Positions 17,237 to 18,889 of a DNA stretch of 64,000 nucleotides are shown here, piece after piece. The notes beneath the pieces are model-generated. The model was not told the origin of the DNA. It searched no databases and saw nothing but the letters and a program-made list of their open reading frames with translations. Position 1 is the first letter of the stretch. Every line of letters starts with the position of its first letter. A program made the position numbers and the translations under genes. The DNA lies in NCBI GenBank assembly GCA_943704425.1, contig CALSCP010000368.1:1-64000 (forward strand), read 5' to 3'. The stretch is from Ministeria vibrans ATCC 50519. Its lineage: Eukaryota; Protista; Filasterea.

Positions 17237-18820
17237 ATGCAAACAAACTCTCAACGCCAACAAGCACTTCTCCAGCGTCGCGCTCTACAGCGCCTTGCCG
17301 ACATTCGTGGTGATGGTACTAGTCTCATTACCCTTCTTGTTCCTGGAAAGGAGCCTGTTCATCGTGTCGTCCAGGTAATTAAGACTTACGCTCAACCTCT
17401 CTTCAAAGTACTATCTCCCTGCCTACTGACCTTCGACCTCTCAAACATGTGACTGAGCTAAAAGAATTACTCGTTCCATGTACTTATGTTGATCCTGTTA
17501 CCCACTATCTTTCTTGCACAACTACAATCTATTCCATTTATTGCGCAACTTTTTCTTTTCAGCTTCTTCACGATGAAATGGCCATGTCGTCGCACATTAA
17601 GAGCCGCGTCAACCGCCAGTCGGTGCAAGAAGCCATTCAAGGATGTTTGTCAATTGTGCGTCAGTATGCGGTGCTCCCGCCTAATGGCTTGGCCATTTTC
17701 TCGTCGGGTCGAGCACTGAAAATCCGCGAAAGTCTGGAGCCTCTCGTGGCCATTCCGTCTCGCAAGTACATCTGCGGCTCGACCTTTCACATCCCCGAGC
17801 GCATTCTCGAGGCCGCACACGGAGGCGACACGCGGGTGTTCGCCTTTGTCGTTGTGGACGGCCACGGGGCGCTCGTGGCGTCGCTGCAAGGACCGACTCG
17901 TCGCACGCTGGCACGCGTCACTTGCAACCTGCCTAAGAAGCAGAGCAACGGAGGCCAGTCCGCGCCTCGTTACGGCCGACAGCGTCTTTAACGCGCGCCA
18001 CGAGTTTCTCGTGCGCGTCTCCGAGGTGATGTCGCTGCAGCTGCGCCCTTTACTCAGCACCGTCACGGCCGGCACGTCGACGGCGGGCGCGCCGCTGCAC
18101 CTGGAGGGCATCATCATTGGGGGTCTCGCAGACCTCAAGAGCGAACTCCAAGAGGTCCTTGAACCGCGTCTGCGCCAGCGCGTTCTCATGCTCGTCGACG
18201 TGTCGCACAGCGGCGAGAATGGTCTGAGCGAGGCCATCTCACGCTCGGCGTCCCACCTCGAAGGCATCCGCTACCTCGCCGAACGCGATTCGATCCAACG
18301 CTTTTTCGACGTCATTGCCCGCGATCCCGACATGGCCGTCTACGGCCGTGCCGCCACACTGGCTGCATTGCGCGCCGGAATGCTCACCCAATTGTTTCTC
18401 TGCGAAAAGAGCGTGAGTGTGAACACAACGCGTACGACGACTGCAACGACGACGACGACGACCACCACCACCACCGCCGTGGTCGTGCCCAGCAGTAGTA
18501 GTAGTAGTACCACTTGTGAGGATCGTGATGGTATGCACATTTGTGGTCTTGTTGAAGACTTGCAAGCGACAACCCTCGAGGGTGAGACGGGCGACGAAAT
18601 GCTTGAGTCGCTGTTCCAACTGGCGCGAGAGACTAACGCGGACGTCAGTGTCGTCTCCATGGCAACGCCCGAGGCACAACAGCTGTACACAGGCTTTGAT
18701 GGTTTTGGGGGTCTACTGCGCTTCCGGGGAGCAATGGATGCACTAGGTGGCACGGTCGAGAGCGACGATGATGACAACGACGATTTGGACATGAGTGCGT
18801 ACGAAGAGGAGTATTGCTAA
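17237..18820 (+). CDS. ETF1: Divergent eukaryotic peptide chain release factor 1 (eRF1) homologue requiring a +1 frameshift at CTT-TAA (17986-17991)
   Basis: Exon 17237-17374, intron 17375-17562, then GDGTSLI, DEMAMSSHIKSRVNRQSV, PPNGLAIF, YICGSTF, LPKKQSNGGQSAPRY. The +1 frame continues NARHEFLVRVSE, GIIIGGLADLKSEL, DVSHSGENGLSEAI, GFDGFGGLLRF and an acidic tail. 188 aa without shift, 464 aa with shift. Confidence 0.9.
17986..18018 (+). promoter_or_regulatory. Putative programmed +1 frameshift site CUU-UAA-C with 3' stem-loop
   Basis: CTT (17986-88), TAA (17989-91), C. Hairpin 17993-18018: GCGCG-c-CACGAG / TTT / CTCGTG-CGCGT, 11 bp with one bulge. Confidence 0.65.
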
Positions 18821-18889
18821 ACAATGAAACAAGAGTGTGTTTTGTGTCTATGTGTGTGTGTGTGTGTGTGTGTGAGTGTGAGTGAAGGT

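Follow-up and report, generated by a model that had tools for sequence, protein, structure and literature searches.

A third, divergent eRF1 paralogue interrupted by a conserved NUU-stop site and continued in the +1 frame: probable programmed frameshifting in a eukaryotic release-factor family

The window (the whole 64,000-nucleotide stretch of DNA analysed) carried an eRF1-family gene whose reading frame ran into an in-frame UAA shortly after the GGQ codons and whose remainder lay in the +1 frame. The full-length product is very likely made by programmed +1 frameshifting at a shifty stop of the kind known from bacterial prfB. The window gene is one of a widely distributed group of cellular eRF1 paralogues, all of which rely on a +1 shifty stop that is conserved. 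On balance, we lean towards a broader reading in which these genes form an old, possibly pan-eukaryotic eRF1 paralogue family, expressed only via a conserved shifty stop ten codons after GGQ and present in the source organism, a filasterean, an amoebozoan, a rhizarian and many uncultured protists. Such a family would give prfB autoregulation its first counterpart in cellular eukaryotes, would have arisen independently of or before the version in Mimiviridae, and would supply a termination-capacity sensor or a back-up release factor.

The features of the gene are listed in Table 1. Exon 1 was aligned with canonical eRF1 NGTSMISLIIPPKDQIARV.. and joined seamlessly to exon 2, which ended in ...GGQSAPRYGRQRL (also given as ...LPKKQSNGGQSAPRYGRQRL). 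The +1 frame from position 17990 started with NARHEFLVRVSE... and supplied the remainder of eRF1 domain 2 together with domain 3 and the acidic tail. The full product comprised 188 + 276 = 464 aa, and a product ending at the internal UAA 188 aa. No other in-frame stop was present in exons 1 and 2.

Table 1. Features of the interrupted eRF1-family gene, with positions in the window
Feature	Position	Strand	Description
Exon 1	17237..17374	+	46 codons, ATG at 17237; includes the GTS-loop region (..RGDGTSLITLLVPGKEPVHRVVQ)
Intron	17375..17562	+	188 nt, GT..AG, phase 0
Exon 2, frame 0	17563..17988	+	142 codons; eRF1_2, E 1e-09
HIKS (canonical NIKS)	17593-17604	+	In exon 2
YICGSTF	17767-17787	+	In exon 2, in place of YxCxxxF
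GGQ	17950-17958	+	In exon 2, ten codons before the break
Shift cassette CGU CUU UAA C	17983..17992	+	E-site Arg, P-site Leu, in-frame stop, C at +4
+1-frame continuation	17990..18820	+	276 codons, then UAA stop at 18818-18820
Local 11-bp hairpin	17993..18018	+	Begins 2 nt after the stop
Thr/Ser-rich low-complexity insert	18432..18515	+	ACG/ACC/AGT repeats, at the eRF1 mini-domain position
GFDGFGGLLRF	18692-18724	+	Followed by the D/E-rich acidic tail

All searches were run with exon 1, exon 2 and the +1 part submitted as separate pieces. The Pfam domain eRF1_2 was split by the break, with profile positions 2-50 before and 76-131 after it, and scored 39.3 and 33 bits on the two sides (cut-off 27.1; E 8.4e-08 downstream). 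The domain eRF1_3 was found downstream with 65.8 bits (cut-off 25.8; E 5.5e-18). The occurrence of eRF1_2 on both sides and of eRF1_3 downstream indicated a single gene with an offset of one base in it. The preliminary description had reported a CTT-TAA-C break with a +1 continuation in an eRF1-like gene, no other lesion and no intron behind the break. The sequence and the Pfam split agreed with it: the CUU-stop-C motif was present at 17986-17992 (CTT at 17986-17988, TAA at 17989-17991, C at 17992), the ORF was uninterrupted after the internal stop up to 18818-18820, and an offset of one base cannot be due to an intron. In domain N, GTS was present, NIKS was changed to HIKS and YxCxxxF to YICGSTF; eRF1_1 was unreported at E<=0.01 in this search of separate exon pieces. 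In Pfam only eRF1 domains were matched, with no homology to bacterial RF2.

Two repeats were observed in and beside the gene. At the poly-Thr ACG/ACC repeat (18432-18487), contigs from elsewhere in the genome stacked up to a summed depth of about 2000 versus 234; this tract is a common low-complexity coding repeat in the source organism. A (TG)n microsatellite occupied 18838-18880, immediately 3' of the gene's stop codon, and similar (CA)n/(TG)n tracts were seen within introns at L004 and L005, the loci of canonical eRF1 and Pelota.

The source assembly was made in 2011 and is broken into 2860 contigs, which would favour an assembly or sequencing indel as the cause of the break. However, Logan contigs from three studies (runs X3, X7 and X13) spanned 17986-17992 with zero differences and zero gaps. 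Run X3, from a separate 2022 study, reached a depth of 233 and had the whole stretch in one contig, and contigs filed under two other organism labels agreed with it at the site. A metagenome scaffold (L010) that differed from the window by one synonymous SNP had the same CTTTAAC. The read evidence consisted of assembled contigs; those of a further run (X19) were without coverage of the site. As proposed in the preliminary description, the letters at 17987-17989 were TTT and not TT in all of these contigs and in L010. The same break was also found in unrelated genomes (see below), and we give an indel almost no chance. The contigs of X7 included the intron and were thus DNA-like. Those of X13 covered the exons and left 17400-17561 uncovered, which is suggestive only, and our guess is that X13 was an RNA run with the intron removed. 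Two SNPs are known in the +1 part of the gene, and both were synonymous in the +1 frame.

The source genome (29.7 Mb) also contained a canonical multi-intron eRF1 on contig C2037, which aligned without a gap across the break of the window gene, and Pelota on contig C1747. Because the genome has both of these, the window gene is a third, strongly divergent eRF1-family paralogue. Together with the spliceosomal intron, this bore out the view of a nuclear, intron-containing eRF1 paralogue, and the separate canonical eRF1 that the preliminary description had suggested looking for was thereby found. The break codon of the window gene aligned with a canonical Met.

A HMMER search with the +1 part recovered 823 eRF1 relatives at E<=1e-3, of which the best, self aside, showed about 30-40% identity. 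A word-indexed protein search returned only the gene itself for the +1 part and three proteins for exon 2. One relative, the GenBank model P0009 from GCA_000151315.2, the assembly of Capsaspora owczarzaki (PMC8855578), lacked GGQ. In the DNA of this locus (L011), frame 0 ended in ...KGGQSSNRFARLRL at CGT CTT TGA C and the +1 frame read DARLHYVRRIAA (DARLHYVRR); the break fell at the same codon as in the window, and its heptamer was identical to that of prfB. In Balamuthia mandrillaris (L017/L018), CGT TTT TAA C was followed by NARHTYLCKVAE in the +1 frame, in two copies, and the model KAL6045447.1 (P0029) skipped GGQ. The gene models of Capsaspora (L011:3001-4714) and Balamuthia (L017/L018:1501-3067) bridged the frameshift with invented introns, so that the catalytic GGQ loop was missing; these paralogue models are annotation errors. 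The site read CGT TTT TAA C in L012/L013, TGG GTT TAA C in L016 and TGG GTT TAG C in L019/L020. Seven further N-terminal ORFs in the protein database stopped exactly at the shift codon.

Four transcript- or contig-called proteins started with the +1 read-in (..GF or ..VF, then the conserved continuation), among them a Trinity transcript of the rhizarian Lapot gusevi (P0066) and the TSA entry GILJ01006795 (P0024). We infer that Lapot gusevi carries the break too. Since these transcript-derived ORFs showed the +1 read-in, the mature mRNA keeps the offset. This bears on a correction at the RNA level, by editing or by polymerase slippage on the T run, after which translation would be ordinary. Such a correction would draw on the short T run at the site (T3 here, T5 in relatives of the UUU type), but a run of T3 is much shorter than transcriptional slippage is known to need, the ORFs of the Lapot gusevi and TSA transcripts retained the offset, and the contigs of X13, possibly from RNA, carried the genomic sequence. 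In addition, the cDNA of Mimivirus R726 equalled its genome sequence (PMC3521657). RNA-level correction is therefore scarcely probable, and frameshifting during translation remains the preferred reading.

The census of the shift site was a scan of the JGI metagenomes for LPxK-x3-GGQSxxR[FY]xR-x3-T[AG][AG], with the codon before the stop left free. It yielded 39 matches, including 16 true split genes with long ORFs on either side, and the P-site codon was NUU in 16/16 of these. The remaining 23/39 matches were discarded as intron borders of AT-rich canonical eRF1 or as ciliate-code genes continuing in frame 0. Four loci with an AT-rich eRF1 (L058, L036, L051 and L059) had an in-frame TAA/TAG at or beside the shift codon, and their frame 0 went on for 160-236 codons; they probably come from ciliates or other organisms in which UAA/UAG are reassigned. 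In one shift-bearing homologue (L038:2227-2289, minus strand), the +1 ORF extended over 706 codons, far beyond the eRF1 C-terminal part, and this long ORF may be a fusion or may read on into a neighbouring gene.

Site composition was compared across 22 loci with DNA, comprising the window, Capsaspora, Balamuthia, metagenome and transcript loci. The P-site codon was UUU in 10 loci, GUU in 6, CUU in 4 and AUU in 2, and the stop codon was UAA in 15, UGA in 4 and UAG in 3. The +4 base was C in 18 loci, G in 3 (always after UGA) and U in 1. At its third, synonymous position the P-site codon had U in 22/22, and the stop varied in identity and was always present. In the sister loci L050/L056, UGA-G (next residue Glu) stood against UAA-C (next residue Asn), and the shift was retained. 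The Arg codon in the E site was CGU in 17/19 loci, compared with 23% CGU among the 547 Arg codons elsewhere in these genes, which suggests an effect of the E-site codon or its tRNA on the shift; CGU was kept at this site whatever the GC content (0.26-0.62). The relatives thus kept NUU-stop(-C) at the same codon, in line with the conservation that the preliminary description had proposed checking. The site was present here as described; beyond that description, it was not peculiar to the source organism and proved to mark a widespread family.

These data also bear on the possibility that the gene is split into a 188-aa product and a separately initiated C-terminal product, or that the short product alone matters. 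The +1 part of the window gene has its ATG for such initiation 13 codons in (the start of P0001). However, no start codon was conserved after the site in the homologues, Capsaspora being without one nearby, and the break cut through domain M. Moreover, what was conserved was a slippery NUU-U with a weak stop context and not an initiation signal. We regard a split gene as very unlikely.

A pseudogene would be a redundant eRF1 copy that was broken by a one-base insertion and is now decaying. It would agree with the canonical eRF1 elsewhere in the genome, with the strong divergence of the window gene (its best relative outside its own cluster showed about 31-39% identity) and with the altered NIKS and YxCxxxF motifs. 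However, the offset was the sole lesion in 464 codons and stood at the same place as in at least 21 homologues, always at NUU-stop, and domain 3 was kept downstream at E 5.5e-18. In shift-bearing sister pairs, the dN/dS of the +1-frame halves was 0.07-0.25 with synonymous sites near saturation (L021/L023: pS 0.72, dN/dS 0.07), whereas the preliminary description had named a value near 1 after the stop as evidence against its reading. Judged on these coding sequences, the +1-frame half is under purifying selection across the family pairs; purifying selection was shown for both gene halves. Stops were swapped for stops and never lost, as in L050/L056. A decaying copy is accordingly quite improbable. 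The same site at the same codon in distant eukaryotes indicates a working device and not a broken gene, which supports a programmed frameshift.

Trees of the +1 parts (FastTree and a quick IQ-TREE run) were star-like with long branches. Shift-bearing rows fell into 7-8 patches, of which well-supported branches forced only 2-3 changes. When the 20 shift-bearing rows were constrained to one clade, the AU test, the sole informative one of these analyses, gave no rejection (p 0.60), and the constrained tree surpassed the short free search by 13.9 log-likelihood units. The trees were resolved too poorly to separate one origin from several, and a single old origin followed by losses may be possible. 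Loss of the shift would be simple, a one-U deletion sufficing to give the common ..RLR[LF]E... The nearest neighbours of the window gene, P0003 and P0006 (about 37-39% identity), had a continuous ORF, and support for this placement was weak. A divergent eRF1 paralogue, P0004 (L015:400-700, also L014), was continuous at the shift codon and had a TGA in frame some 20 codons before GGQ (..GGHT*LAHKLTVSLPRKHGRGGQ); this TGA reflects either readthrough as in Mimiviridae or UGA read as sense.

The conserved elements comprised UU-U over the P-site codon and the first stop base, any stop, a weak +4 position and CGU in the E site, and they are the signature of shifty-stop +1 frameshifting. We infer the slip itself and its efficiency from this pattern. 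In the proposed mechanism, exons 1 and 2 would be translated until Leu codon 188 (CUU) occupies the P site and UAA-C, a weak context for termination, the A site. Release at the UAA would give the 188-aa fragment; without domain C and with only half of domain M, this fragment is presumably inactive. Alternatively, the peptidyl-tRNA would slip from CUU to the overlapping UUU, AAC (Asn) would be read next, and 276 codons in the +1 frame would complete the 464-aa protein, which has GGQ as well as domain 3 and the acidic tail. tRNA-Phe can re-pair perfectly on UUU and tRNA-Leu well; for tRNA-Val and tRNA-Ile the fit is imperfect. Because GUU and AUU P sites give a first-position mismatch, simple slippage may not be the whole mechanism.

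Slow termination would leave time for re-pairing on UUU or for reading of the +1 codon. Since slipping would compete with termination, the yield of full-length protein would rise at low and fall at high termination activity, resulting in a prfB-like circuit for feedback or back-up. The activity sensed could be that of the protein itself, of canonical eRF1 or of both. By analogy with prfB, the most likely function would be homeostatic, with full-length output inverse to termination activity; for a role of the frameshift as a termination sensor, we consider the chances about even. With HIKS in place of NIKS, the protein may no longer recognise stop codons, as true autoregulation would require.

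Stimulators of the shift were also sought. A 3' stem-loop had been noted separately, but the local hairpin was rejected as a stimulator: it was no better than shuffled sequence (z -1.44 and 0.24, not significant), and no comparable fold was found in three homologues (z -0.02, -1.04 and 0.72). The sequence upstream of the site (..GGCCGACAG CGU) was without an AGGGGG-like element that could act as a Shine-Dalgarno-like stimulator. The homologues checked shared no 3' structure, and no other stimulator came to light; the proposed shift would require no such structure.

Release-factor autoregulation by frameshifting has so far been viewed as a bacterial trait with giant viruses as the one exception. 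No account of a cellular eukaryote with an eRF1 that depends on frameshifting was found in the full texts searched, outside which most subscription journals lie. If the reading given here is true, the family would be a phylogenetically deep new case of eukaryotic programmed +1 frameshifting that uses a simple, portable signal, CGU-NUU-stop-C. It would also bring to light a third, so far unstudied eRF1-family protein whose level depends on termination capacity. The origin of the recoding in Mimiviridae (convergence versus capture from a host paralogue) would become testable, and the public annotations of Capsaspora and Balamuthia would be corrected.

The closest parallel in design is bacterial prfB, which encodes RF2 and is autoregulated by a +1 frameshift at CUU UGA C. 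Both are release-factor genes with an in-frame stop, a slippery NUU, a stop followed by C and the remainder in the +1 frame, and they would share the logic of termination versus slippage if autoregulation is true here. However, the protein encoded here has the eRF1/aRF1 fold, which is unrelated to bacterial RF2. In prfB, a Shine-Dalgarno-like stimulator 3 nt upstream assists the shift, whereas such an element is absent here and would be unworkable on a eukaryotic ribosome; the upstream feature conserved in the present family is the E-site CGU. The eRF1 paralogue family also differs in using all three stops, and the window gene in being a paralogue beside an uninterrupted main eRF1.

Among eukaryotic systems, the shifty stops of Euplotes are genome-wide, mostly AAA-UAR and non-regulatory, and antizyme shifts at UCC UGA U as a polyamine sensor with RNA stimulators. 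Both resemble the present site in that a +1 shift occurs in a eukaryote with a stop in the A site, and antizyme resembles it further as a sensor. Antizyme differs in its P-site codon, in sensing polyamines and in its RNA stimulators. Divergent eRF1 paralogues have been described in Tetrahymena (eRF1-2; Atkinson et al., PMC2613156) and in Acanthamoeba castellanii (PMC3521657). These are likewise long-branch extra copies of eRF1 beside a canonical copy in protists, but they were reported without internal stops and with no mention of a frameshift (PMC2613156, PMC3521657). Plant eRF1-1 is autoregulated by readthrough of its normal stop combined with NMD via a 3'UTR intron (PMC5397192). It offers the likeness of a eukaryotic eRF1 gene that senses termination efficiency at its own stop; however, the plant gene has no frameshift and no internal stop.

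The nearest system by protein type is that of Mimiviridae, in which viral eRF1 requires a +1 shift at CUU UAG C (Mimivirus R726) or CUU UAA C (Megavirus mg280) together with upstream UGA readthrough (Jeudy et al., PMC3521657). Recoded eRF1 was extended to other Mimiviridae by Zinoviev et al. (PMC6582330), and the viral case has been called unique (PMC3521657, PMC5313130). The viral and the present genes share an eRF1-type protein with a +1 site, and the Megavirus heptamer is identical to that of the window. Pattern scans of a viral contig collection, in which coverage of Mimiviridae is doubtful, matched no split gene of the present type and no R726-like pattern either. The published full sequence of R726 (Fig. 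S7) was continuous after GGQ, across GGQSAQRFERIRDGS, and its Leu-Ser junctions fitting CUU-U-AGC lay only between NIKS and YxCxxxF, in domain N. From this published sequence and the motif, the Mimivirus shift appears to sit at another position in the protein than that of the window gene. The viral genes need readthrough of an upstream UGA-C, which the window gene does without. The viral proteins are without the mini-domain and the acidic tail. The window gene has a spliceosomal intron and cellular neighbours.
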